From: Macrostomum hystrix
Taxonomy: Eukaryota; Animalia; Platyhelminthes
Assembly (NCBI GenBank): GCA_950097015.1
Contig: CATNEN010000024.1
Location: forward strand, 1,488,001-1,552,000
Reading direction: 5' to 3'
DNA: 64,000 bases
Both the position numbers and the translations under genes were made by a program. Positions 1 through 62,749 of the stretch are shown here, piece after piece; position 1 is the first letter of the stretch, and the number at the start of each line of letters is the position of its first letter. The notes beneath the pieces are model-generated. The model ran no database searches and was not told the DNA's origin. It was given only the letters and a program-made list of their open reading frames with translations.

Positions 1-596
1 ATCTTCAGGTCTGATAGAATCCCTCAGCCTCGGATCTTTAGGTCTGATAGAATCCCTCAGCCTCGGATCTTCAGGTCTGATAGAATCCCCTCAGACTCGG
101 ATCTCCAGGTCTGATAGAATCCCCTCAGACTCGGATCTTCAGGTCTGATAGAATCCCTCAGCCTCGGATCTTTAGGTCTGATAGAATCCCTCAGCCTCGG
201 ATCTTCAGGTCTGATGGAATTCCTCAGACTCGGATCTTCAGGTCTGATGGAATCCCCTCAGACTCGGATCTTCAGGTCTGATAGAATCCCTCAGACTCGG
301 ATCTTCAGGTCTGATAGAATCCCCTCAGCCTCGGATCTTCAGGTCTGATAGAATCCCCTCAGACTCGGATCTCCAGGTCTGATAGAATCCCCTCAGCCTC
401 GGATCTTCAGGTCTGATAGAATCCCTCAGACTCGGATCTTCAGGTCTGATAGAATCCCCTCAGCCTCGGATCTTCAGGTCTGATAGAATCCCTCAGACTC
501 GGATCTTCAGGTCTGATAGAATCCCTCAGACTCGGATCTTCAGGTCTGATAGAATCCCTCAGACTCGGATCTTCAGGTCTGATAAAATCCCTCAGG
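1..596. repeat. 33/34-bp minisatellite (CTCGGATCTTCAGGTCTGATAGAATCCC(C)TCAGA), about 18 copies, in STAT intron 4
   Basis: Direct tandem periodicity, truncated by the window start. Confidence 0.97.
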
Positions 597-622
597 GAGT
601 TGCCTTTAAGTCACTTCATTAC

Positions 623-3600
623 CTTCTTGAACTCGTCGGACTGAAACTCTGCGAACACAACTAAAGCGAATTTTTTGTGGCACACGCCCCCGCCTCCGCC
701 ACCACCGGTGCTGCTGCCGCTGCCACTGCTGCTGCCACCGCTGCCTGCCATCTCCCTTGGCAACGAGGTGAATTTCATCTTCAGAACCGGTCCGTCCCGG
801 CTCTCGTTCGGACTAGTCGCGGATCCGCAAGGACTCCAGGTGCACCTACCGCTTTGGTTCTCCAGTCCGGATTCGCTGTGCAGCTTCTCCAGCTGGTTCA
901 AATCGATGGACTCCAGTTCCTTAGCCTGATCCTCGGTGAGCACGGCAACGCGCAAATTGAGCAGTCGTTGAGTCAGGTAGCGAGGGCACAGGTGACGCAG
1001 GCGCAACTCGTACTTGGCCTTGCCTTTTTTAATTACACGATCCGACTGAGAAGTTATGACTAGGCAGCTGCGGGAATAGACATGAGCCATGGGATCTGCT
1101 GGAGATCACAGCTGCGGAGATAGACATGAGCCATGGGATCTGCTGGAGATAACAGCTGTGGGGATAGACATGAGCCATGGGATCTGCTGGAGATCACAGC
1201 TGCGGGGATAGACATGAGCCATGGGATCTGCTGGAGATCACAGCTGCGGGGATAGACATGAGCCATGGGATCTGCTGGAGATCACAGCTGTGGGGATAGA
1301 CATGAGCCATGGGATCTGCTGGAGATCACAGCTGTGGGGATAGACATGAGCCATGGGATCTGCTGGAGATCACAGCTGCGGGGATAGACATGAGTCATGG
1401 GATCTGCTGAAGATCACAGCTGCGGGGATAGACATGAGCCATGGGATCTGCTGGAGATCACAGCTGCGGGGATAGACATGAGCCATGGGATCTGATGGAG
1501 ATCACAGCTGCGGGAATAGACATGAGCCATGGGATCTGCTGGAGATCACAGCAATGGGAAAATGGCCAATGAATTGAATCTGAAGCTGAATTTAAGCTAA
1601 GCAAACGAATAAAACGTACCTAGCTAACAAAGACAAGCCGAAAGTACCCGCCTCATCAGCGCTGAGCAGTTTGCAGTTTTGGAGCCTCTCCAGACTCTCT
1701 AGCGTGTCCACGGTGTCACTGGCCAGCTGGGACAGCTCACTCTCGCACACTTCATTTACAAAGGCCAGCTTGGCGCGCACTGACAGTTTGGTTAGCAGCT
1801 TGGCATGCGTGGCCTGGATGCTTGTCGATAACTGCTGAAGCTCGAAAGCCTGATTTACGGCGTAAAATTTGCTTAAGGAGAGTATCGAAGCAAGGTGTCA
1901 GGAGAGGGAGCGAGGTGTCAAGAGAGGGAGAGAGGTGTTAGGAGTGGAAGCGAGGTGTCAAGAGAGGGAGTGAGGTGTCAAGAGAGGGAGTGAGGTGTCA
2001 GGAGAGGGAGTGAGGTGTCAGGACAGGGAGCGAGGTGTCAGGAGAGTGAGTGAGGTGTCAAGACAGGGAGCGAGGAGTCAAGAGAGGAAGCGAGGTGTCA
2101 AGAGAGGGAGCGAGGTGTCAGGAGAGGGAGTGAGGTGTCAGGAGAGGGAGCGAGGTGTCAGGAGAGGGAGTGAGGTGTCAAGAGAGGGAGAGAGGTGTTA
2201 GGAGAGGAAGCGAGGTGTCAGGAGAGGGAGTGAGATGTCAGGAGAGGGAGCGAGGTGTCAAGAGAGGGAGAGAGGTGTCAGGAGAGGGAGCGAGGTGTCA
2301 GGAGAGGGACTGAGGTGTCAGGAGAGGGAGTGAGGTGTCAGGAGAGGGAGCGAGGTGTCAGGAGAGGGAGTGAGGTGTCAGGAGAGTGAGTGAGGTGTCA
2401 AGAGAGGGATTGAGGTGTCAGGAGAGTGAGTGAGGTGTCAGGAGAGTGAGTGAGGTGTCAAGAGAGGGAGTGAGGTGTCAAGAGTGAGTGAGGTGTCAGG
2501 AGAGGGAGTGAGGTGTCAGGAGAGGAAGCGAGGTGTCAGGAGAGGAAGCGAGGTGTCAGGAGAGGAAGCGGGGTGTCAGGAGAGGTATTGAGGTGTCAGG
2601 AGTGGGAGCGAGGTGTCAGGAGAGGGAGTGAGGTGTCAGGAGAGGGGGCGAGGTGTCAAGAGAGGGAGTGAGAATTCAGGAGAAAATAAACCAGAAGAAG
2701 GTGGCGTGGGTTAAATTATTTTTTGTTGTCTCCAGAATTAAACCTTCAAGCAAAACTTTAAGCAAACCTGAGCCTTAGAGCTGAGATTGGACAACAGATT
2801 GTTTAACAAGATGTTGTCCCGCCTTGCATCCGACTGCTGCATCCGTGAACGCTTGCTAGGAGGACGGTCGTCGTCTTCGTTGCGGTCAGTAGCAACAGGC
2901 AAGAAAGTCTCGTAGATGTACTGCTCACTTAACAGACAATCGCGCACCATGAGAACAAATTCCAGAGGAGACTTCTCGTATCGGCTCAGAATACAGTCGC
3001 GATAGCGCTGTCGATTGTCTACATCCAAAACCGACTCAGCCTCACCAAGCACCTGCGACTCTAGGTTAGCTATCACCCGAGCCAGGAAAGTGCTGGCGAA
3101 CTGGCTGAACTGCTGCTGGCTCTCCACTTCTTCCAGGCCAACGCTTGCTATCTGCGGACCGGTCAGAGCACCACGATTCAATGATGATGATGACTGAGTA
3201 GTCTGTATGATGACTGAGTAGTCTGTATGATGACTGAGTAGTCTGTATGATGACTGAGTAATCTTTATGATGACTGAGTAGTCTGTATGATGACTGAGTA
3301 ATCTGTATGATGACTGAGTAATCTTTATGATGACTGAGTAATCTGTATGATGACTGAGTAATCTGTATGATGACTGAGTAGTCTGTATGATGACTGAGTA
3401 GTCTGTATGATGACTGAGTAATCTGTATGATGACTGAGTAATCTGTATGATGACTGAGTAATCTGTATGATGACTGAGTAGTCTGTATGATGACTGAGTA
3501 GTCTGTATGATGACTGAGTAGTCTTTATGATGACTGAGTAATCTGTATGATGACTGAGTAATCTGCATGATGACTGAGTAATCTTTATGATGACTGAGTA

Positions 3601-6600
3601 ATCTGTATGATGACTGAGTAATCTGTATGATGACTGAGTAGTCTGTATGATGACTGAGTAATCTGTATGATGACTGAGTAATCTGTATGATGACTGAGTA
3701 ATCTGTATGATGACTGAGTAATCTGTATGATGACTGAGTAATCTGTATGATGACTGAGTAGTCTGTATGATGACTGAGTAATCTGTATGATGACTGAGTA
3801 ATCTGTATGATGACTGAGTAGTCTGTATGATGACTGAGTAATCTGTATGATGACTGAGTAATCTGTATGATGACTGAGTAGTCTGTATGATGACTGAGTA
3901 GTCTGTATGATGACTGAGTAATCTGTATGATGACTGAGTAGTCTGTATGATGACTGAGTAATCTGTATGATGACTGAGTAATCTGTATGATGACTGAGTA
4001 GTCTGTATGATGACTGAGTAATCTGTATGATGACTGAGTAATCTGTATAATGACTGAGTAGTCTGTATGATGACTGAGTAATCTGTATGATGACTGAGTA
4101 GTCTGTATGATGACTGAGTAGTCTGTATGATGACTGAGTAGTCTGTATGATGACTGAGTAATCTGTATGATGACTGAGTAATCTGTATGATGACTGAGTA
4201 ATCTGTATGATGACTGAGTAATCTGTATGATGACTGAGTAATCTGTATGATGACTGAGTAATCTGTATGATGACTGAGTAATCTGTATGATGACTGAGTA
4301 ATCTGTATGATGACTGAGTAATCTGTATGATGACTGAGTAATCTGTATGATGACTGAGTAATCTGTATGATGACTGAGTAATCTGTATGATGACTGAGTA
4401 ATCTGTATGATGACTGAGTAATCTGTATGATGACTGAGTAGTCTGTATGATGACTGAGTAATCTGTATGATGACTGAGTAATCTGTATGATGACTGAGTA
4501 GTCTGTATGATGACTGAGTAGTCTGTATGATGACTGAGTAGTCTGTATGATGACTGAGTAATCTGTATGATGACTGAGTAATCTGTATGATGACTGAGTA
4601 ATCTGTATGATGACTGAGTAGTCTGTATGATGACTGAGTAATCTGTATGATGACTGAGTAATCTGTATGATGACTGAGTAATCTGTATGATGACTGAGTA
4701 ATCTGTATGATGACTGAGTAATCTGTATGATGACTGAGTAATCTGAATGATGACTGAGTAATCTGTATGATGACTGAGTAATCTGTATGATGACTGAGTA
4801 ATCTGTATGATGACTGAGTAATCTGTATGATGACTGAGTAATCTGTATGATGACTGAGTAATCTTTATGATGACTGAGTAATCTGTATGATGACTGAGTA
4901 ATCTGTATGATGACTGAGTAGTCTGTATGATGACTGAGTAATCTGTATGATGACTGAGTAGTCTGTATGATGACTGAGTAATCTGTATGATGACTGAGTA
5001 ATCTGTATGATGACTGAGTAATCTGTATGATGACTGAGTAGTCTGTATGATGACTGAGTAGTCTGTATGATGACTGAGTAATCTGTATGATGACTGAGTA
5101 ATCTGTATGATGACTGAGTAATCTGTATGATGACTGAGTAGTCTGTATGATGACTGAGTAGTCTGTATGATGACTGAGTAATCTGTATGATGACTGAGTA
5201 ATCTGTATGATGACTGAGTAGTCTGTATGATGACTGAGTAGTCTGTATGATGACTGAGTAGTCTGTATGATGACTGAGTAGTCTGTATGATGACTGAGTA
5301 ATCTGTATGATGACTGAGTAGTCTGTATGATGACTGAGTAATCTGTATGATGACTGAGTAATCTGTATGATGACTGAGTAGTCTGTATGATGACTGAGTA
5401 GTCTGTATGATGACTGAGTAATCTGTATGATGACTGAGTAATCTGTATGATGACTGAGTAGTCTGTATGATGACTGAGTAGTCTGTATGATGACTGAGTA
5501 GTCTGTATGATGACTGAGTAATCTGTATGATGACTGAGTAATCTGTATGATGACTGAGTAATCTGTATGATGACTGAGTAGTCTGTATGATGACTGAGTA
5601 ATCTGTATGATGACTGAGTAATCTGTATGATGACTGAGTAATCTGTATGATGACTGAGTAATCTGTATGATGACTGAGTAATCTGTATGATGACTGAGTA
5701 ATCTGTATGATGACTGAGTAATCTGTATGATGACTGAGTAGTCTGTATGATGACTGAGTAATCTGTATGATGACTGAGTAATCTGTATGATGACTGAGTA
5801 GTCTGTATGATGACTGAGTAGTCTGTATGATGACTGAGTAATCTGTATGATGACTGAGTAGTCTGTATGATGACTGAGTAATCTGTATGATGACTGAGTA
5901 AGTCTGTATGATGACTGAGTAGTCTGTATGATGACTGAGTAATCTGTATGATGACTGAGTAATCTGTATGATGACTGAGTAGTCTGTATGATGACTGAGT
6001 AGTCTGTATGATGACTGAGTAATCTGTATGATGACTGAGTAATCTGTATGATGACTGAGTAATCTGTATGATGACTGAGTAATCTGTATGATGACTGAGT
6101 AATCTGTATGATGACTGAGTAGTCTGTATGATGACTGAGTAGTCTGTATGATGACTGAGTAGTCTGTATGATGACTGAGTAATCTGTATGATGACTGAGT
6201 AATCTGTATGATGACTGAGTAGTCTGTATGATGACTGAGTAGTCTGTATGATGACTGAGTAATCTGTATGATGACTGAGTAGTCTGTATGATGACTGAGT
6301 AATCTGTATGATGACTGAGTAATCTGTATGATGACTGAGTAATCTGTATGATGACTGAGTAATCTGTATGATGACTGAGTAGTCTGTATGATGACTGAGT
6401 AATCTGTATGATGACTGAGTAGTCTGTATGATGACTGAGTAATCTGTATGATGACTGAGTAATCTGTATGATGACTGAGTAATCTGTATGATGACTGAGT
6501 AATCTGTATGATGACTGAGTAATCTGTATGATGACTGAGTAATCTGTATGATGACTGAGTAATCTGTATGATGACTGAGTAGTCTGTATGATGACTGAGT

Positions 6601-7679
6601 AATCTGTATGATGACTGAGTAATCTGTATGATGACTGAGTAATCTGTATGATGACTGAGTAATCTGTATGATGACTGAGTAATCTGTATGATGACTGAGT
6701 AATCTGTATGATGACTGAGTAGTCTGTATGATGACTGAGTAATCTGTATGATGACTGAGTAATCTTTATGATGACTGAGTAATCTGTATGATGACTGAGT
6801 AGTCTGTATGATGACTGAGTAGTCTGTATGATGACTGAGTAATCTGTATGATGACTGAGTAGTCTGTATGATGACTGAGTAATCTGTATGATGACTGAGT
6901 AATCTGTATGATGACTGAGTAATCTGTATGATGACTGAGTAGTCTGTATGATGACTGAGTAGTCTGTATGATGACTGAGTAATCTGTATGATGACTGAGT
7001 AATCTGTATGATGACTGAGTAGTCTGTATGATGACTGAGTAGTCTGTATGATGACTGAGTAATCTGTATGATGACTGAGTAGTCTGTATGATGACTGAGT
7101 AATCTGTATGATGACTGAGTAATCTGTATGATGACTGAGTAATCTGTATGATGACTGAGTAGTCTGTATGATGACTGAGTAATCTGTATGATGACTGAGT
7201 AGTCTGTATGATGACTGAGTAATCTGTATGATGACTGAGTAGTCTGTATGATGACTGAGTAATCTGTATGATGACTGAGTAATCTGTATGATGACTGAGT
7301 AATCTGTATGATGACTGAGTAGTCTGTATGATGACTGAGTAATCTGTATGATGACTGAGTAATCTGTATGATGACTGAGTAGTCTGTATGATGACTGAGT
7401 AGTCTGTATGATGACTGAGTAATCTGTATGATGACTGAGTAGTCTGTGAGTAGTGTGTATGATGACTGAGTTGTATGATGACTGACAATGCTCACAATCC
7501 AAAGTGTTCAATCTCACAGTCAGAGAATAGTCGTCGGTGTCCAACACTGGATCGATGACCTGCCTCAATTCCAGGCCCATAACGCCGCTCCACAGTCGAT
7601 CGTAGAGTGCCCTGAGTTCTCTGTGCGCACTCTGGCTAGTGTCGCATAGATACTGTAATTGTTTTGCAGTTGGCCACAT
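623..7679 (-). CDS. STAT: Divergent STAT transcription factor, 5' part (exons 7679-7518, 3151-2768, 1849-1620, 1067-623; continues beyond the left edge)
   Basis: Exon 1 LYDRLWSGVMGLELRQVIDPVLDTDDYS resembles the STAT N-domain ([23 protein letters not shown]). Exon 2 RYEKSPLEFVLMVRDCLLSEQ resembles [21 protein letters not shown]. The exon 3/4 junction LSLLAS-CLVITSQSDRVIKK resembles LVTSTFIIEKQPPQVLK. VAVLTEDQAKEL resembles ATIISEQQAKSL, and VCHKKFALVVFAEF resembles VTEEKFTVLFESQF. All junctions are GT..AG and phase-consistent (0,0,2,0). The exon 3 acceptor is the least certain. Confidence 0.85.
1066..1552. repeat. 44-bp minisatellite, about 11 copies, in STAT intron 3
   Basis: Unit GCTGCGGGGATAGACATGAGCCATGGGATCTGCTGGAGATCACA; CATGAG recurs at 1081 and 1125. 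Confidence 0.97.
1893..2672. repeat. 20-bp purine-rich minisatellite (GAGGTGTCAGGAGAGGGAGY), about 39 copies, in STAT intron 2
   Basis: Direct tandem periodicity. Confidence 0.97.
3186..7486. repeat. 20-bp satellite (ATGATGACTGAGTA[A/G]TCTGT), about 215 copies, in STAT intron 1
   Basis: Highly homogeneous 4.3-kb array with one common A/G variant site and a 1-nt insertion at 5901. Confidence 0.99.
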
Positions 7680-12310: not shown

Positions 12311-14824
12311 TCAGTCAGCGTGTCCATTGCACTGCGCAGAGTACATGCCATTAACAAGCCTATCGGTGTCTGAGCCGCCACGTTGCTTTAACAGTTTAAG
12401 CAGCCTCAGCTTTCGACGCACTAGCTTGGCCTCCTTACGGCGCCTCTTGGCGTCTCCGCTGCTACAAGCCTCGTCGCCGGGCTCGGCAGCGGGCTGACGA
12501 ATGAGCGGCTGCTGCAGCGAACAACGAGAGTTGGATAGAACTAATTTACTGGCCTTTCTAATTGGATATACACAGCTAAATATGGATAACTTGGATACCT
12601 TGTCAGTTGCGTCATATATTTGGGAAGAACCTTCCGACGACAAGCTGCCATTCGCTTTCCGCTTTTTGCTGGCTGATTCTCCGTTAGGTAGCCGCAGATG
12701 GTCAGGGGACTCGGGGCTCAGCTCCGGCAGTTGCGGGACTGCGACGCTCCATGGCAACGGTTCGGGCCGCATAGGCCTGGCGGACATCAGCTGGCGCAGC
12801 TCTTTATTAGGTCTGGAACGCGATTGGCTAGACGGAGCAACGCTTTTGGTTGCCATGGTAACAGCTGGCGAAGGAGACAATTTGGATTTAGCATTTTCAT
12901 TGACTTCCGTTGCCGTGGCAACACTTGACGAATGGAAGAACTTAGAATTAGCATTCTTCTTAATTTCCATAGCCGTAGCGACAGCAGATGAATGAGATAA
13001 TTCGGATTTGGCTTTCTTATGACCTCCTATTTCCGTGGCAACGGACGGCGCGTGCAAAATATTTGGATTAACACTCTTCTGAACCTCATTCGCTTTAGGA
13101 ACAGTCGATTGAAGATTGGCAGTGGTTGGGTTTACTTTACTGGTTGTCAAAGCAGCGTGCGCCGCTTCTTTGGCTTTCTCACCATTCTGGCCTACAGTTG
13201 ACGCGGCAACGGTGTGCGCAGACTTTAGCGGTTGGCGATGAAAGCCAGTCTGGCTTGACTCGACAGTTGTCCCGACAGCCGTGTCAACAGGTGACAAGTG
13301 GTGCTTAGCAACAAACTTGGCGAGAGCGGAGAATGTCGATTTACCAGTCGAGTTAGCCGACGCCGGTTCAACAACAGAGCTGGCCGGCAGCTTGGCAGGA
13401 GAGGAGGCGGCGGACTCAGCGTTAGGGCCAATCAGCGGACTCAGATCAGTGCGCTTGTACAGCAGAATGTAGGGGCAGGACTGCAGCACCCGAGATTCGG
13501 TGATGCGATCAACGCATGAGTCGTTAAGAGACCACCAATCTCTGCCCCGCCTGGCGTAGCAATAATAGTGACCGAATTTGGTGCTGGAGCCCTGGTGAAT
13601 CACGACAGCGTACAGTTCGTACAGTACAGGTCTGCCCGGCTTGGACATGTAGGGCCGGATGTCTATGCTTAGTGGGAACTGCACAAATTTGCTGATCTTG
13701 TTGCTGTGACCCCACTGGAAACGGTTGAGCTGCACAGTTAAAATCGGCGGCCCAGAGGCGATGCTGAAGCTTTTCTTGGCCGTCACCTTGGCGCGGCACT
13801 TGTCGCATTTGTAGGCATTGGAGTCTTTTAGCAGATCCGGGGAGACAAATTTGCGCAGACAGTCGGCCAGGCTAGAGCTAAACTGAATGCACAGGCTCAG
13901 GTCCATGAAGTCTTCGAATGTGCGCGACTCCGTGCCGCATCTGGTGCACACAACCGAAGATTTCAGCCTGCCGCCGAACAAGACCCGGATGGCATTAGAG
14001 GCCAACTTAGGACCGCCGCGTCCTCTGCTGCCGCCGCAGTTGCCCTCCATATAGTCTAGTAGGCATCTGAGAAATTCGTGCGCATCCTCCTGACGATTGC
14101 TGCGAAGGGTCGGTGAAACTGTTGTCACGCGGGCCATGAAGGCGCGTGGGTAGGCCGGCCCGCCGCCGGTAGCTCTCTGGGCGTAGGCGCCGAACTCGCA
14201 AATGGCGCACCAACGACCGCCGAAATTCTGCTGATGATGCCGCTGCTGATTGTTAAAGTGACTGCGCTGAGCCGGCTGCAGCAGGGATTGCCGGCAGGTG
14301 GATGCTGCTCGGTGTTGGCAAGCGAAATTAGCAAACGGTGCCGTGTGCAGCAGCGCCTGCAGCACGGAGATCATATAGCAATAGTTGCCCTCGTTAACAA
14401 AGCCATACGGCTGCCCAGTGTAGGACCTGTCAAGTTGCACATCGGAGAAGGAAAACTGCGCCGGCTGCTTGACAACAGCGGAAACTGGCCGGGACTGCTG
14501 CGGCTGTTGAGCAGACTCAAGCTTTGCCTCGCTGGCAACAGACACATTGTTGCCATTCAGCAATACCTGATGATGCGCTGCTACTGGGGCTGTAGTCAGG
14601 ATAGTGGCGCCCAACAGTTTTAACTTGTCTAACACTCTGGCATCCCAGTTGCCAGGTGAAGGGACAAACTCCAGCCGCTGTTCAAGTAGGTGGCCAATTA
14701 GGGGATTTCGAACCAGCCGGCTTGCTTTTTGGCCGCCGCCATTGCAGCCAGATTTGCGCAGCGAGTCCCGCACAGCCGTTAGTAGGCATGCGCCACCCTC
14801 ACTAGACTGATTGCCTAACTGTAG
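12311..14824 (-). CDS. USP36: Ubiquitin-specific protease, USP36/USP42 family (large terminal exon; start codon not located)
   Basis: Cys box GFVNEGNYCYMISVLQAL, QEDAHEFLRCLLD, His box YELYAVVIHQGSSTKFGHYYCYAR and WWSLNDS. N-terminal LLEQRLEF resembles USP36 LLQKIEF, and there is a basic C-terminal tail (KRRRKEAKLVRRK). The frame stays open up to a TTCACTGCAG acceptor at 14826-14825. Confidence 0.85.
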   Translation of the reverse strand, partial: LQLGNQSSEGGACLLTAVRDSLRKSGCNGGGQKASRLVRNPLIGHLLEQRLEFVPSPGNWDARVLDKLKLLGATILTTAPVAAHHQVLLNGNNVSVASEAKLESAQQPQQSRPVSAVVKQPAQFSFSDVQLDRSYTGQPYGFVNEGNYCYMISVLQALLHTAPFANFACQHRAASTCRQSLLQPAQRSHFNNQQRHHQQNFGGRWCAICEFGAYAQRATGGGPAYPRAFMARVTTVSPTLRSNRQEDAHEFLRCLLDYMEGNCGGSRGRGGPKLASNAIRVLFGGRLKSSVVCTRCGTESRTFEDFMDLSLCIQFSSSLADCLRKFVSPDLLKDSNAYKCDKCRAKVTAKKSFSIASGPPILTVQLNRFQWGHSNKISKFVQFPLSIDIRPYMSKPGRPVLYELYAVVIHQGSSTKFGHYYCYARRGRDWWSLNDSCVDRITESRVLQSCPYILLYKRTDLSPLIGPNAESAASSPAKLPASSVVEPASANSTGKSTFSALAKFVAKHHLSPVDTAVGTTVESSQTGFHRQPLKSAHTVAASTVGQNGEKAKEAAHAALTTSKVNPTTANLQSTVPKANEVQKSVNPNILHAPSVATEIGGHKKAKSELSHSSAVATAMEIKKNANSKFFHSSSVATATEVNENAKSKLSPSPAVTMATKSVAPSSQSRSRPNKELRQLMSARPMRPEPLPWSVAVPQLPELSPESPDHLRLPNGESASKKRKANGSLSSEGSSQIYDATDKVSKLSIFSCVYPIRKASKLVLSNSRCSLQQPLIRQPAAEPGDEACSSGDAKRRRKEAKLVRRKLRLLKLLKQRGGSDTDRLVNGMYSAQCNGHAD

Positions 14825-22085: not shown

Positions 22086-23336
22086 ATGGAAACTGCTGCA
22101 TTTTCACCAGCAGCTTCGCGGCTGCCCAGACTGTGCGCAGCGTTTGCTCTAGTCTGCTGCGGCTTTCTGATTGGAATGGCTGACAGCTCTGACGCATTCG
22201 ACCCTTATGTAACCTACGGGCCGTGGAACGCCTGGGGCTTCTGCACCAGCGACTGCAAGCAGTACAGGCGCCGATCCTGCAAATCCAGGAACTTCCTCTG
22301 GCCGTGCAAAGATGTCTTTCAACAGCAGAGCTGCTCCATTGGGAACTGTATTGAAACAGACCTGCGAACTCTGGACTGCGGCAGGAGGCGCACTTTGCAG
22401 CCGGTTGTCCAACGGATCTTCGGTGGTGTTGAATCCCAGCCGCACAGTTGGCCCTGGCATGTAAGCTCGAGTGTTGATGCTTTGAGCATATATATTAGAT
22501 ATATTCGAATCTTCAGTCGTATAATTTGGTCAATAGGAGATATTATAGAAGCATATAAAGTACAGCAATTCCTTACCCGACGTACAATCCCGTAGGTTAG
22601 CCTCGTGCGCAGTCGACATCGGCCACAGCAGTTCTGCGGCGGCACCCTGATTCATCCGCAATTCGTGTTGACTGCGCGCCACTGTGTAGTCGGCAACAAC
22701 AGGTACGCGCGTCAGCTGTTCGCCCTTGTCGGCGACCACGACACCCGAGTCAAGCATCCGAACGAGCGTCTCCACCGCGTGGAGAAGATTCGCACACATC
22801 CGAGCATTCATGCCGGCAATCTAGAGTTTGACGTGGCCCTGCTGAAGCTCGAGGAGCCGGTGACGCTCAGCGAGCACGTCCGACTGGCTTGTCTGTCACC
22901 TCCAGACCACCAGATGGCCAGCGTCCCAGTTAACACCATGTGTACCGCCATCGGCTTTGGTCGTCAAGGCCGAAGCATTGCCGATGGGCCGATGTCGCCG
23001 ACACTGCGCGAGGTCTATCTCTACCTGACTGACAACAGGAAGTGCGAAGAAGAGTATACAAGGACTAGCGTGAGCATCAACCCGCAAAGTCACGTATGCG
23101 CCTCAGCCGTTGGCAGGGATACCTGCTCAGGCGACAGCGGCGGTGGCCTGTTCTGCTCCTTCTATCCAACGACTCCTTCCGTGGGCGTGGAGCGCTGGTA
23201 CCTGTACGGCATCACCAGCTTCGGGCATCCGCGCGGCTGCGGTTATCACAGCGGTGTCTTCCAGCGAGCCAGCGTCCTGTTTGACTGGGTTCAGAGCTCC
23301 ATCAATGCCGATCTGCGAGACCGACGACGAGTCTGA
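22086..23336 (+). CDS. Secreted trypsin-like serine protease with an N-terminal TSP1 domain (exons 22086-22460, 22596-23336; 371 aa)
   Basis: Hydrophobic signal segment, TSP1-like YGPWNAWGFCTSDCKQYRRRSC and activation site R-IFGG. Catalytic triad LTARHC / FDVALL / GDSGG, with S1 Asp in RDTCSGDS. Phase-0 intron GTAAGC..CCCGTAG. Confidence 0.93.
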
Positions 23337-26300: not shown

Positions 26301-26500
26301 ATCCCAGGGCACATTTGCATCACACATAGGCGTATCCTGTGTACACAGAATCGTAGAATTTTCTCCCCTGATGACAAAGCTTTTGATAAAAAGCAAAGAA
26401 ACGTTACATTTTCCTTAGAAAAACTATGGACAGAAGAGCTTTGAGATGTTACTAAGTCATAAGTCATGGCCATGTAGCCATGCCATTCAGCAAAGTCCCC

Positions 26501-30837
<4,337 letters not shown>

Positions 30838-34897: not shown

Positions 34898-36955
34898 TTA
34901 CGCGCGATTTTCTTGCGCGTAATCATCCGGAGCATCTAGATCCACTAACTCGGGCGGCTCGTCGCTATCCTCGCTCGGTGGAACGGTGTCCCGCAGTGTG
35001 GCAGCAGGCGTCGCATCCTTAACTAAATCATCGTAGTCCTCATCGTCGTCATCTTCGTGCTCGTCCTCTTCGTCGCTTTCCAAGTGCGCTGTCAACACTT
35101 CGTCCTCGCCGTCTCCGTCAGTCTTTTTATGCCGAGCTCGGACGGCGGCTGAAGCGGAAGTCGAGGAGGACCCCTCGCGTAGGCAGCAAAAGTAGGCTAT
35201 TATAATCACCAGCGGCAGGACGACGCCAACTAAAAGGGCCGCCCAGATCCACGGCCGCTCTCTGCTGGCTTCGCGCACAGCGTCAATCAAAGATTGGAAG
35301 GCCCAGTCGGCCTGGCGTTCCGCCTGCTGTTTAACCTGCCAAGTCTGTTCGGCGAATGCGTCAGCCAGCTGCTTGTGGTCCACTATCAGCAGGTTATCGA
35401 ATGCAGCACCTTCGGTCACAGACCACAGCTCAAGACCGATGGCGCCAATGGGAGCAAAGCGCCAAGGCTCCCTATCGGCGTACAAATCGGGATTTGGGAT
35501 TTTGCGCGGCTGCCAGACGCCTTTGTAGGCTGGATTGTTCACCAGAGGTGGAGACCATTTGCCGCGGTAAAGAGGATTTTTCACCTTTGGCCGAATCCAG
35601 GGACCGCAGCCGGGAGCGTTCTTGCACCTGGAAAGATGCAATTGGGCAATGCGAAGATAGTGGAAATTTAATACACTACCTATCATATTTACTTTTTGGC
35701 ATAAGAGAGGCAACATTTCTCCATCGATTACTTCTTCTTCGAGTAATCGGCTTCTAAATCTTCATTGGCTAGGATTAGATGCTAGACCTAAAACAGTGAA
35801 AGCTCGTATTCACCTAAGTTGAGTATTGTGTAACTTCCATGAAAATCAATAATGTATTTATTAGATGGCTCATGCTTGTGAGCTATTTGCTTACCTGGGA
35901 TTATCTATTCTACCGGGTTCCCAGACGCCGTCCATATCGTCGTCCCAATCTCTAGGCTTCTGGGCCATCGGATCGGGCACTGTTCTCGGCTCGCCGAGCA
36001 GCCAGCCAGGAGGCATGACAGCCTGCTCGTCCTCCACAAACTCCGGCTGCGCCTCGTCCCAATCGGCCGGCCTGAAAGCCTGGGGATCTGGAATCTTCTC
36101 CCGGTCATCCCAATCGGACGGCCTCGCATCGGTCGGATCGTCAACATCCGGATGTGGATTAACGGGCGGCTCGAGGTCCTCCAACAAGCTGCCGCTGTTC
36201 ACAAGGATCCTGTCCACATAGACTTGAAAGCTATTATCTGAATTTATTACCAGAGTGTACAGATGAGTTCGCTTATCGGTGAAGTATGCATCAAGATCGA
36301 CCTTCGGCTTCTTGGAGTGCTTCTCCTCAACAAGGCTGGTGAGAGGACTGCGGTGGCGCAGAATAAAGTGCAGCTTGCTCTCTGGGCCGCACTTGTCCGG
36401 CCCAAACATGATAGTGTAAGGCGTCTTGTCGTTGAAATTGTTCAAATCAAGGCTAGGCTCGTCCGTCAGCAGTTTCAAATAAGCTCCGCCGCACACCATG
36501 CCCTGCTGGAACTTCACCTCATACTGCAGTACGAACTGCTTCTCTGACCGGTCGAACACAAACGGCCGGGTCAGCTTGGCCGAGACTGCATAGTGTCTGG
36601 CCTGGCTCTTCATCACCAGTGCGTAGTCGCCATCCACAACAGAGCTGACAGGCACCTCCACTGACCAGAGGCCGTCATACTTAGCCAGGCTGGAGTCTGT
36701 CTCGTCGTCTTTCTTAGACTGCGATGCTACCAGGCCATGGTCTGAAAGGTTGCCAGGGCCGGGAAAGTATTGCGCATAGTAGACACCATCGGGCAGCTTG
36801 GGTGGGCTGAATCTTAGCTTGGTTGTGGGTCTGACACGATCATCTGCACCCTTAGCTTCATAATTGCTGGTCTCGTGGCCATGCAGGTGCTGAGCTGAGA
36901 CATGTAAAATCAGTAGATAATGCAGCAGTGCGATTGCTTGCTGTAGCTGCATCAT
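34898..36955 (-). CDS. CANX: Calnexin (exons 36955-35895, 35627-34898; 596 aa)
   Basis: Signal peptide, LQYEVKFQ..CGGAYLKLL, IMFGPDKCG and P-domain repeats (IPDPQAFRPADWDE, KPRDWDDDMDGVW). TM segment WIWAALLVGVVLPLVIIIAYFCC followed by an acidic tail. Phase-2 intron GTAAGC..TTTCCAG. Confidence 0.97.
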
Positions 36956-60988: not shown

Positions 60989-62275
60989 ATGCTAGACTCC
61001 AAGGACAGTGTCCTTGTCGACCAGGCAGAGGCAGACACCGAGGCTGTGGCAGCGCAGGATGTTGAAAATAGTAGCGGCCCAATCGATCTACATTTGTCAA
61101 TACCGGATAAGAAGCTGCCATCAGAATCTGGCTTCGAGGCCAAGCCCGGGCACGTCGCGGAAGACGTAGACGATCGAGACGATGACAGAGGCGGTGACGA
61201 GTACGCTGGCGGTGATATCGACGATGAAGACGATGAACCAACTGAGCATCGTCAACTCCACCATCGCCGGAGGCTGGAAGATGACGGTGATGACGGTGCG
61301 CATCTTGCCGACGAGGACAAGTCCACCTCGAGCCCGTGCTCCGTTCCGGACTCCGCAGCCGGGTGCCGGGATCGCGATCTTCACGATCCCATGGAAATTG
61401 AACGCGCCTGCATGGAAGCGCGGGGTGAGGTGAGCGTCAAGTGGGACATCACGCGCAAAAACAAGACCAGTATAGTCATCAACGGCTACAAGATGACGGA
61501 GAGTCGGGCTGGCAAGGACGGCCGCATCTTCTGGCGCTGCAGCAAGAGGTTCTGCCCGGCCACAGCCATCAGCCTCGGCCAGCGCCTTCTCTCCGTGCGC
61601 CAGGTGGACGAGAACCGGTTTCACAACCATCCGCCCACGGGTCGGGAGGAATTCTTCCGCGGCGACTTCAGCGAGCCCGGCACGCTGACCAGCGTCACAA
61701 TCAAGTGGCCGGTGCTGCGGGCCGCCAGGTCTTCGGGAGCGACGCAGACGCCCAAATCTGCAGCAGCGACAGCGGCAGCGGCAGCGCTAACAGCCGATGC
61801 AGAGCAGGCTGACACGGTTCTGAGAGCCGGACGATCGTCATTCCAGGATGATGAAGCAGCAGCAGCAGTTTCCGCAGCCGCTGCCACGTCGTCCATGCTG
61901 CACTCCTCGCAGGCGCAGACTGCTTCCTCGCTGTTGGCGGCTGCTGGCGCCGGAGTCCCCCAGTTACAGCAGCACCAGCTTTACCAGTATCAGCAGCACC
62001 TGCATCAAAGTGCCAAGCGAATGCGCCACGGCTCTATTGAGAGCGGCTGCAGCAGCACTGGCACTTCAGAGGCCGCATTGTCCGATCCGTTGTGTTCCAG
62101 TCAGCAGCGGCAGCTGGGCCAGCTCAGGGCGACCTCAGGAGGCAGCGGCGGCGGTCTGATGCCAGCCGCGGCTGCGGACGCGCACAAGGCCTTCCTATCG
62201 CTAGCCTCCAGTCTGGGGATGTCCTATCCGGCATTTTTTCCAAATTCCCTGCCAGCTGAGTCAATGCTTCAACAG

Positions 62276-62309
<34 letters not shown>

Positions 62310-62749
62310 TGCATCGTTTACAACAGCAACACCAACAGTTGCAGCAGCAGCAGCAGCAGCAGAGTAGCTACCAACCCATTAACAGCCATCTGAGTGCCAG
62401 CAAGTCCTACCATTCAATATTCAACCCGCCACCGCAGCCCGCTCTGCCGTCACTGGCGCATCAGCCGAGGCTGCATCCGACACAGCAGCCGCCGGTTGAA
62501 GTGACCGCCTCGCCTTTGAAAGAGGCCCTGTCCCAGGTCGACAATTATCAGCTGCAGCGGCAGCTACGCCGACTCGATGGCTACTTTCGCTCGGGCATTG
62601 TTGCCCTAGCTGACAGCCTGACGGTGCGGCACAGCGCCGCTGCCAACGACGCTGAGTTTGTTGCCTGGGAGCGCGACAGCATGAGCCGCCTATTCGCCTA
62701 CATGGACGGGCTGGAACGGGTGCAGAAGCTGGCCAGTGAGCTGGTCTGA
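60989..62749 (+). CDS. FLYWCH-type zinc-finger protein with acidic N-terminus and poly-Ala/poly-Gln tracts (586 aa, uninterrupted ORF)
   Basis: IVINGYKMTESRAGKDGRIFWRCSKRFCPATA...FHNHPP matches the FLYWCH pattern (F/Y..YWRC..C..HNH). GC-rich 1.76-kb ORF. Upstream exons cannot be excluded. Confidence 0.85.

Follow-up and report, generated by a model that had tools for sequence, protein, structure and literature searches.

STATs are among the most conserved signaling transcription factors of animals, and the length of their coiled-coil, their basic DNA-facing loop, and the glutamate pair (EE) that follows it are usually treated as fixed. Replacing EE by AA in mammalian STAT3 and STAT1 reportedly abolishes DNA binding (Horvath, Wen, and Darnell, in 1995), and the EE-to-AA form of STAT3 is a classical dominant negative. 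The release of STAT1 from DNA is controlled by acidic and basic residues of the same region, the e-f loop (PMC3507856). Among flatworms, the planarian stat5 genes (Smed-stat5 and Djstat5) are induced in the response to dsRNA (PMC8797187) and needed for regeneration (PMC13662587), which shows that Platyhelminthes have functional STATs. Djstat5 is described as having conserved DNA-binding and SH2 domains and as clustering among STAT5 proteins. A literature search returned no described STAT of Macrostomum and no statement that flatworms lack STAT. Here, we analyze a gene of Macrostomum hystrix that belongs to this family and departs from all three of these features.

The gene lies on the minus strand of the window, which is the whole stretch of 64,000 nucleotides that was analyzed, and its limits, 623 and 7679, correspond to the last base of exon 4 and to the A of the start ATG. 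Exon 1 (7518 to 7679, minus strand) comprises 54 codons from the ATG at 7679, encodes the first helices of the STAT N-domain, and is followed in the sequence by a GT donor at 7517-7516. The three other exons, on the same strand, complete the N-domain and add a linker and the start of the coiled-coil (exon 2, 2768 to 3151, 128 codons), a helical coiled-coil segment (exon 3, 1620 to 1849, 230 nt, i.e., 76 codons and 2 nt), and the first two-thirds of the STAT beta-barrel DNA-binding domain (exon 4, 623 to 1067, 1 nt and 148 codons, residues 259/260-407). All four are open and in phase. Spliced RNA contigs from three public runs of one study (X2-X4) confirm the order E1-E2-E3-E4, with GT..AG at all junctions: the joints 1067>1620 and 1849>2768 read GT..AG on the minus strand (CT..AC on the plus strand), and the loose end of the contig past 3151 matches the end of exon 1, at 7518-7547. 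The contigs, which include the pieces 2767-3151 (exon 2), 1620-1848/9 (exon 3), and 623-1067 (exon 4), show zero differences from the window, and no retained intron or additional exon, in the coiled-coil or elsewhere, was found in the spliced contigs of these runs. A run of a second study contributes an exact match of 233 nt to the gene. The transcripts confirm the exon model of an earlier, sequence-only reading of this DNA except in one detail: exon 3 starts at 1849 and not at a later CAG, which adds AFELQ to the protein. Past 623, the transcript extends for another ~920-950 nt, which is enough for an SH2 domain and a C-terminal tyrosine, and the first 30 of these loose letters translate to LSSTATLAIC, resembling LPDGALSLALCC of M. 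lignano. The window covers the 5' two-thirds of the gene, which is expressed and whose remaining exons lie before the window start.

The introns, also read on the minus strand, are packed with tandem repeats. Intron 1 (3152 to 7517) is almost entirely a 20-base minisatellite (TRF period 20, 213 copies, 3187-7447) that is skipped in the RNA contigs; it is open in the frame of exon 1, which results in a mechanical ORF of 1364 aa (3585-7679). Intron 2 (1850 to 2767) contains ~40 copies of another 20-base repeat (TRF, 1893-2683). In intron 3 (1068 to 1619), there are 11 copies of a 44-base repeat (TRF, 1065-1552), each carrying a CCGCAG acceptor-like site, and the site of the last copy is the acceptor that is used. 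The start of intron 4 (1 to 622) has its GT donor at 622-621 and continues to the window edge as a 33/67-base minisatellite (TRF, 1-595).

The closest relatives of the encoded protein are two proteins of Macrostomum lignano, of 624 and 628 aa, which are 47-76% identical to it per exon. One of them, P0001, was found by a word-index protein search that scored residues 1-54 of exon 1 only, and the same type of search with P0001 as the query returned P0001 itself alone. Identity to P0001 is 76% for exon 1 (P0001 residues 1-54), 47% for exon 2 (BLASTP E 9e-31), and 61% for exon 3 (P0001 residues 184-260; BLASTP E 1e-24); exon 4 is 72% identical to its M. lignano relative over aligned positions (BLASTP against P0001, E 2e-52). 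Both relatives have a STAT-type SH2 domain (GFASK...FLLRFSETT) as well as the tyrosine motif DGYVPR; in alignment A1, the phosphotyrosine-binding arginine, R501, is invariant and Y582 nearly so. P0026 (628 aa) also has the DNA loop VVFITHDSQ, the counterpart of the VVxIxHGxQ or VVVISN recognition loop of metazoan STATs, in place of which the P0001 model has VVFIDSQ. The STAT_int and SH2 regions of the relatives score under the Pfam cutoffs, and the linker region of the M. lignano models of this clade (clade 1) has only ~45 residues and no Pfam match, a shortness that may be real or reflect a missed exon. Judged from these comparisons, M. lignano A0A1I8HF71/A0A1I8GXG3 is probably orthologous to the gene in the window. 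We favor orthology over old paralogy because a neighboring USP36-like gene shows a similar divergence from its best match in M. lignano, a comparison that covers one gene only. For the same reason, the possibility that P0001 represents a paralogue of the same genome seems less likely, a single neighbor being thin evidence.

Domain profiles, which the sequence-only reading had proposed as a check, bear out its N-domain and give a mixed answer for the rest. Exon 2 matches the Pfam family STAT_int at 30.8 bits (E 4.3e-07), above the cutoff of 26, exon 4 matches STAT_bind at 19.2 bits, under its cutoff of 27 (E 0.002, over profile positions 2-114 of 133), and exon 3 has no Pfam match at E up to 10, including STAT_alpha, the profile of the four-helix coiled-coil domain of ~180 residues. 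Exon 4 is nevertheless colinear with the DNA-binding domains of 10 canonical STATs (alignment A2). The best sequence match in the PDB is STAT5a (1y1u, E 8.5e-07), and PDB searches with the single sequences of exons 2 and 4 returned only weak or low-complexity matches. When P0001 was compared by HMMER with 1.84 billion representatives, 24 proteins passed E 0.001, Macrostomum STAT-like clusters among them; of the other matches, those that a name or a Pfam scan could place were all canonical STATs, which leaves several matches aside. No canonical Macrostomum STAT was present among the named proteins of these 24, but most canonical STATs of any species also fell short of this threshold, so that one may have escaped the search. 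In the AF2 model of exon 4 (pLDDT 70), the best structural matches are to STAT5a residues 331-455 (Z 6.0), with generic Ig folds only slightly lower (Z 4.5). For the full-length model of P0026, all of the top 46 Foldseek matches in the PDB are STATs (E down to 5.6e-16); a VIA comparison gives Z 21.2 to STAT6 and 19.3 to STAT5a, and the N-domain of the model matches those of STAT1 and STAT3 (Z 12, rmsd 2.5-2.7 A, 124 residues). These models have moderate confidence (pLDDT 67 and 70), and because STAT alignments seeded them, they provide no independent test of the family assignment. By its sequence and predicted fold, the gene is a genuine, very divergent STAT relative.

The order of domains, from the N-domain through a helical bundle to an Ig-like DNA-binding barrel, is like that of vertebrate STAT5a/5b and STAT6 and of the STAT5-like proteins of insects, annelids, and cephalopods, the SH2 domain and the GYV tyrosine being those seen in the relatives. 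The GYV motif of these relatives resembles the DGYVKPQ of STAT5, and the VVxI(T/V)H(D/G)xQ loop of P0026 is of the STAT5/6 type. However, identity to STAT5 and STAT6 is only ~20%, and the core is ~130 residues smaller than that of STAT5a (residues 155-576 of the P0026 model span STAT5a 138-690). One peculiarity is the shortened coiled-coil. The DNA-binding domain had been placed at about residue 259, and it does begin there, residue 259 being the split codon and the domain running from 260. This leaves ~125 residues between the N-domain and the DNA-binding domain, compared with 190-205 in canonical STATs, and makes the coiled-coil region ~70 residues shorter than that of STAT5a; with no hidden exon in the transcripts, the shortening claimed by the earlier reading holds. 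P0001 has no match to STAT_alpha or STAT_linker in Pfam either (E up to 1 for STAT_alpha). In the P0026 model, four short helices (156-178, 184-213, 216-242, and 248-260) superpose on the STAT core starts, and they are roughly half as long as the coiled-coil helices of STAT5 and STAT6. The model suggests that the four-helix bundle is probably present at about half length. Such a short bundle has a precedent in the STAT superfamily, since the core of Dictyostelium STATa (1uur/1uus) is similarly compact and of near-equal size (P0026 model 156-594 versus 253-702, Z 13.8-14.2). Yet Dictyostelium STATa lacks the metazoan N-domain that the window gene has, the identity is 13-15%, and compactness probably arose independently in the two.

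The second peculiarity concerns the e-f loop (TSLPRE...CHKKF, residues 359-392) of the DNA-binding domain. Alignment A2 places this loop where the sequence-only reading had put it, and the replacements that it had claimed there, of the basic loop by Gly and Ser and of EE by HK, set the protein apart from the 10 canonical sequences, all of which have a K/R-rich loop followed by T/M/A-[ED]-[EK]-K. A coding tract of 20 Gly/Ser residues (686 to 745, minus strand) lies inside the loop, and after it the protein reads V-C-H-K-K-F where canonical STATs have V-T-E-E-K-F; in STAT5 and STAT6 the corresponding elements are the basic e-f loop and TEEK. The tract is predicted to be disordered (pLDDT <50, exon-4 residues 106-125), as is the loop in both the exon 4 and the P0026 models. 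Its DNA resembles a microsatellite, with TRF repeats of period 12/21 at 702-750, and it is retained in the RNA contigs. In PDB sequence searches, the tract draws artificial linkers. The M. lignano relative has ETSHSGGG at this position and a Gly/Ser tract of 7 residues; in the BLASTP alignment, the tract of the window gene exceeds that of M. lignano by 15 residues. From this comparison, the length of the Gly/Ser linker is specific to the species and results from the expansion of a short loop. Around it, the window gene retains the consensus QVxK...KF and VRxL of alignment A2 and a lysine-rich a-b loop, IKKGKAKY.

Whether these features belong to one gene or to a lineage can be assessed in M. 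lignano, whose STAT-like proteins fall into three deeply diverged clades. These form one group, apart from canonical STATs, at 99/95 support, a value subject to the caveat of long branches. The lineage-specific expansion that had been suspected is therefore upheld within that caveat. Clade 2 (PAA59492/PAA81626, 658 aa) and clade 3 (PAA55757/PAA49832, ~690 aa) keep the SH2 domain and the tyrosine and are ~24-33% identical to clade 1; clade 2 has an e-f loop that is basic and a linker region of full length, clade 3 has a Ser-rich loop, and the long Gly/Ser tract is found in neither. The EE pair is absent and the coiled-coil is short in all three Macrostomum clades, so both changes are lineage-wide. 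This agrees with the first half of the outcome that the sequence-only reading had named as counting against it, substitutions general for the lineage together with normal GAS binding. By sequence comparison, this is a small STAT family specific to Macrostomum, whose oddities are a trait of the lineage and not a one-off defect.

We consider it fairly probable that the gene encodes a compact, fast-evolving, phosphotyrosine-activated Macrostomum STAT with altered DNA contacts. In this case, the remainder of the barrel, the linker (possibly in a shortened form), a STAT-type SH2 domain, and the DGYVPR tyrosine would come from the missing 3' exons. For the linker, the SH2 domain, the tyrosine, and the last third of the DNA-binding domain, this view draws only on relatives 47-76% identical per exon. 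With such an SH2 domain and tyrosine, the protein would be activated by tyrosine phosphorylation and would dimerize by SH2-to-phosphotyrosine contacts. We assume, against the precedent of the mammalian EE-to-AA mutants, that DNA binding would be kept through the lysine-rich a-b loop and the VVFITHDSQ loop; the e-f loop would contribute fewer contacts to the backbone, which could change the affinity or the off-rate. In the simplest view, the Gly/Ser tract may be a trinucleotide-repeat expansion, tolerated in a loop for which the lineage no longer has a use.

An activatable STAT fits better than a dead decoy because the relatives keep the SH2 arginine and DGYVPR, and P0026 keeps VVFITHDSQ. A natural dominant-negative STAT, which would be phosphorylated and dimerize, possibly with the clade that has a basic loop, but would not bind DNA and would damp signaling, is an unlikely alternative. 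The window gene and its M. lignano relative have neither the basic loop nor the EE pair, the classical dominant-negative STAT3 is an EE-to-AA form, and clade 2 (P0002) retains RSCRRGRAAD before CAQK, so partners of differing DNA-binding capacity coexist. However, the pair is missing from all three clades, and if this were lethal to binding, there would be no DNA-binding STAT among the Macrostomum proteins found. The conservation of the a-b loop lysines and of VVFITHDSQ in P0026 would also be unexpected in a domain freed from DNA binding. The 72% identity of exon 4 to its M. lignano relative over aligned positions likewise speaks against a decoy. A related reading, which we hold to be distinctly improbable, is that JAK-STAT-like signaling in Macrostomum runs entirely on private, compact, EE-less STATs, among which the clade of the window gene would be a phosphotyrosine-dependent modulator without the e-f clamp, acting through heterodimers with the clade that has a basic loop, or through DNA contacts of very fast off-rate. 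If true, evolution would have produced a natural counterpart to the dominant-negative STATs that have been engineered.

In vertebrate STAT1, the dimer-specific import signal sits in the e-f loop region that is lost here, and a constitutively nuclear STAT could have replaced this signal by a classical NLS, PPSKRSR. The motif is indeed located after the N-domain, as previously noted, at residues 151-157 in the acidic/basic, disordered linker of exon 2; the segment aligns with residues 141-162 of P0026, which are disordered too (pLDDT <50), and the lysines of the canonical loop are absent. But its equivalent in the M. lignano relative is PPASKQIRLQ, which makes a conserved additional NLS unlikely, and short K/R clusters commonly arise by chance in disordered linkers, so we regard constitutive nuclear localization as very improbable. 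Nothing found here supports either this reading or that of a decoy. It is hardly credible that the unusual architecture results from an annotation or assembly artifact or from a decaying pseudogene, with missed exons, a retained intron, or frame errors. Such a view could invoke the minisatellite-packed introns, the first of them open in frame, and the linker exon that the M. lignano gene models may miss. Against it, the RNA contigs of three runs join the exons without differences or intervening sequence, the four reading frames are intact, and independent M. lignano models have the same architecture.

On sequence grounds, then, the window gene belongs to a well-known family, from whose other members it has diverged. 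In a flatworm genus that regenerates and is amenable to transgenesis, an expressed STAT family breaks all three rules that are usually taken as fixed, yet its N-domain is retained, as are the SH2 domain and the tyrosine in the relatives from M. lignano. It may therefore serve as a natural experiment on what a STAT can dispense with in its DNA clamp and its coiled-coil.

The interval 623-7679 holds the first four exons of a minus-strand STAT-like gene whose 3' third lies beyond the window. Exon 1 (7679-7518, residues 1-54) was placed from sequence, as was exon 2 (3151-2768, residues 55-182), which contigs confirmed; exon 3 (1849-1620, residues 183-258) has a strong donor at 1620 and shares a split codon (residue 259) with exon 4 (1067-623, residues 260-407), placed by sequence and contigs alike. 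A look-up of public runs found that four runs of one study (X2-X5) match 596-3200, each containing about 0.44 of the sampled words, approximately the exonic share. When contigs of X2, X3, X4, and X1 (a second study) were aligned to this stretch, single contigs spanned 623-1067, 1620-1848/9, and 2767/8-3151 with zero differences from the window, and their joints (1067>1620 and 1849>2768) read CT..AC on the plus strand, which is GT..AG in gene orientation; the introns had no depth in these contigs. Past 3151, a loose end matches the final 30 bases of exon 1 exactly, and X1 supplied an exact 233-nt piece of exon 4. Contigs extend about 920-950 nt past exon 4, where the first 30 loose letters translate as LSSTATLAIC, similar to LPDGALSLALCC after the equivalent exon end of a Macrostomum lignano relative. 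The coverage and joints thus confirm the four-exon model of the sequence-only reading, the start of exon 3 at 1849 being the sole correction, and indicate that the gene continues outside the window. Since the contigs of X2-X4 are spliced and intron-free, they give evidence of an RNA origin for runs whose records carry no library type. The gene is expressed.

Minisatellites dominate all four introns, each with a different repeat: a 20-mer in 213 copies in intron 1 (3187-7447), a different 20-mer in about 40 copies in intron 2 (1893-2683), a 44-mer in 11 copies in intron 3 (1065-1552), and a 33/67-mer repeated 18 times or more in intron 4 (1-595, reaching the window edge). Intron 1 is open in the frame of exon 1, and the resulting mechanical ORF of 1364 aa could mislead gene predictors; every 44-mer copy of intron 3 carries a CCGCAG acceptor-like site, only the last of which is used. 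Separate contigs of X2-X4 (42-70 nt, some with 1-base indels) fall on the intron-2 20-mer at 2319-2575; their likely source is transcription of similar repeats at other places, not STAT intron 2.

Family searches were run exon by exon. Pfam STAT_int matched exon 2 (30.8 bits, cutoff 26, E 4.3e-07) and STAT_bind matched exon 4 below its cutoff (19.2 bits against 27, E 0.002), colinear with profile positions 2-114 of 133; exons 1 and 3 had no Pfam match. In a word-index search where exon 1 alone was scored, an in-frame read-through reference kept full-length proteins eligible, and the search retrieved the M. lignano UniRef protein A0A1I8HF71 (P0001, 624 aa) at 76% identity. Exons 2, 3, and 4 are colinear with P0001 at 47%, 61%, and 60% identity (E 1e-24 to 2e-52; 72% for exon 4 counted over aligned positions). 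Past the exon-4 equivalent, both P0001 and a near-copy of it, P0026 (628 aa), carry the rest of the barrel (a loop reading VVFITHDSQ in P0026, VVFIDSQ in P0001), a short helical segment, then an SH2 domain of the STAT type (GFASK...FLLRFSETT), and a DGYVPR tyrosine motif. In Pfam, P0001 gave weak, ordered matches to STAT_int, STAT_bind, and SH2, all below cutoffs, and none to STAT_alpha or STAT_linker. Searched exhaustively with HMMER, 1.84 billion representatives yielded only 24 proteins for P0001 at E <=0.001, among them P0001 itself and the M. lignano clusters P0002 (658 aa, E 1.6e-40) and P0004 (690 aa); the others identifiable by name or Pfam scan, which leaves aside several short or unnamed matches, are canonical STAT5/6-like proteins of insects, a springtail, a mite, an annelid, a cephalopod, and a fish. 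At about 420-460, P0001 and P0026 have only some 45 residues in place of the roughly 110-residue linker domain of STATs, and clades 2 and 3 of M. lignano are full-length there. A fragment model, P0025, departs right at ...NKPPSLNK; this points to an exon junction there and possibly to a missed exon in the clade-1 models.

The AlphaFold2 model of P0026 (17-sequence alignment, mean pLDDT 67) has an N-domain, a disordered stretch (141-162), four short helices (156-178, 184-213, 216-242, and 248-260), a beta-barrel (263-402) whose loop at 356-365 is disordered, and a short helical linker before the SH2 domain. Foldseek against the PDB gave STATs alone as its 46 best matches (E down to 5.6e-16). 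With VIA-align, model residues 158-588 matched STAT6 129-647 (Z 21.2), 155-576 matched STAT5a 138-690 (Z 19.3), and 156-594 matched Dictyostelium STATa 253-702 (Z 13.8-14.2); STAT1 and STAT3 N-domains matched at Z 12 (rmsd 2.5-2.7 A over 124 residues). The predicted core thus has about 130 residues fewer than the STAT5a core and is approximately the size of the Dictyostelium one. Exon 4 of the window gene, folded with an alignment of DNA-binding domain first halves (pLDDT 70), gave strands flanking a disordered stretch at exon residues 106-125, the Gly/Ser tract. Its best structural matches (STAT5a 331-455, Z 6.0 over 115 residues) are slightly above generic Ig-like folds (Z 4.5), and are weakly consistent with a STAT barrel, though not independent of the seeding alignment. 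Confidence is moderate for both models, each seeded with an alignment of STATs.

The e-f loop is atypical, and its placement by the sequence-only reading agrees with our alignment of exon 4 to STAT DNA-binding domains. All 10 canonical STATs in it read F-R-N-x-x-L-K-x-I-K-R-x-x-[KR]-x-G...V-[TMA]-[ED]-[EK]-K-F, whereas the window gene reads K-F-T-S-L-P-R-E-M-A, 20 Gly/Ser(/Thr) residues, then V-C-H-K-K-F, retaining the flanking V, K, and F. The tract is repeat-like in its DNA (TRF periods 12 and 21 at 702-750) and is retained in transcripts, not spliced out. In M. lignano clade 1 the residues before V-C-H-Q-K-F are just ETSHSGGG, and by this comparison the long tract is an expansion specific to the species of the window. 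In clade 2 the loop, RSCRRGRAAD, is still basic and precedes C-A-Q-K; in clade 3 it is Ser-rich, and neither clade has the acidic EE pair. The loss of this pair, proposed as an oddity of the gene, is real and yet shared by all three Macrostomum clades. The short coiled-coil region also stands: the N-domain end and the DNA-binding domain are separated by about 125, 134, and 147 residues in the three clades, compared with some 190-205 in mammalian STAT3 and STAT5, and the assembled isoform contains no extra coiled-coil exons. DNA-facing segments outside this loop are conserved, namely the a-b loop (R-V-I-K-K-G-K-A-K-Y against a consensus Q-V-x-K-x-x-x-K-F), the V-R-x-L strand, and, in P0026, VVFITHDSQ.

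The window exons thus encode a STAT N-domain followed by a short helical region and then a STAT barrel whose e-f loop is remodelled and disordered. By analogy with its relatives, the protein would be phosphorylated on tyrosine and then dimerise through SH2-phosphotyrosine contacts, and established STAT structures suggest that the replaced loop would correspond to a STAT1 segment with residues adjoining the DNA backbone. This segment also contains the lysines of the dimer-specific import signal. Two glutamates of the STAT1 DNA-binding domain adjoining the DNA backbone control release from DNA (PMC3507856, whose headings name E411); we take them to be E411 and E421 and to fall in the segment that corresponds to the replaced loop.

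How would such a loop affect function? With the EE pair missing from every Macrostomum clade and the other segments that contact DNA still conserved, we moderately favor a protein that still binds DNA, with altered kinetics or specificity, the Gly/Ser tract being a tolerated expansion. A decoy STAT would fit the report attributed to Horvath et al. in 1995, who are said to have abolished DNA binding of STAT3 and STAT1 by EE-to-AA changes; set against the same conserved segments, it seems unlikely to us. We are more doubtful still that PPSKRSR (residues 151-157) acts as an extra nuclear localization signal: it aligns with the disordered 141-162 of the P0026 model, but M. lignano reads PPASKQIRLQ at the same place, so that the basic cluster is not conserved. 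An artefact or a pseudogene, which would account for the unusual loop, is very improbable beside spliced contigs identical to the window.

The idea of a lineage-specific expansion fits a maximum-likelihood tree in which the three M. lignano clades group together against 11 canonical STATs (99/95, a grouping that carries an explicit long-branch warning, the internal branches being very long); the expansion would be that of an already divergent STAT. With one neighbour gene as the yardstick, the window gene would most simply be an orthologue of clade 1: the single-exon USP36/42-like ubiquitin hydrolase at 12311-14773 (minus strand; Pfam UCH, E 1e-52) is 47% identical overall to its best M. lignano match, with a highly similar catalytic core and divergence elsewhere, strong in the tail. 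By this divergence the window comes from a Macrostomum species distinct from M. lignano.

The window carries other genes. A secreted-looking trypsin-like serine protease (22086-23336, plus strand; Pfam Trypsin, E 8e-43) follows a Cys-rich exon whose start resembles a signal peptide. SRP54 (about 26487-30816, minus strand; GTPase domain, E 3e-40) has coding-looking tandem repeats in its introns and flanks that yield long spurious ORFs on both strands, and strong GC and AT skew marks 26-30 kb. A calnexin/calreticulin-family gene of at least two exons (34898-36955, minus strand; Pfam Calreticulin, E 2e-103) encodes a transmembrane segment and an acidic tail, and a single 586-aa ORF (60989-62749, plus strand) with an acidic N terminus encodes a FLYWCH zinc finger (25.7 bits, cutoff 23.6) as well as tracts of poly-Gln and poly-Ala.

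Our literature search found no paper on a Macrostomum STAT. Among other flatworms, planarians have functional STAT5-like genes: one is induced during the response to dsRNA (PMC8797187), and Djstat5 is required for regeneration (PMC13662587). Compact or truncated STATs have precedents in Dictyostelium STATa, which is compact, and in the poorly annotated nematode and rotifer clusters among the Atlas neighbours. Nematode STATs that lack the N-domain are a further precedent. Hence, the gene is a new structural variant inside a known family and not a new kind of system.
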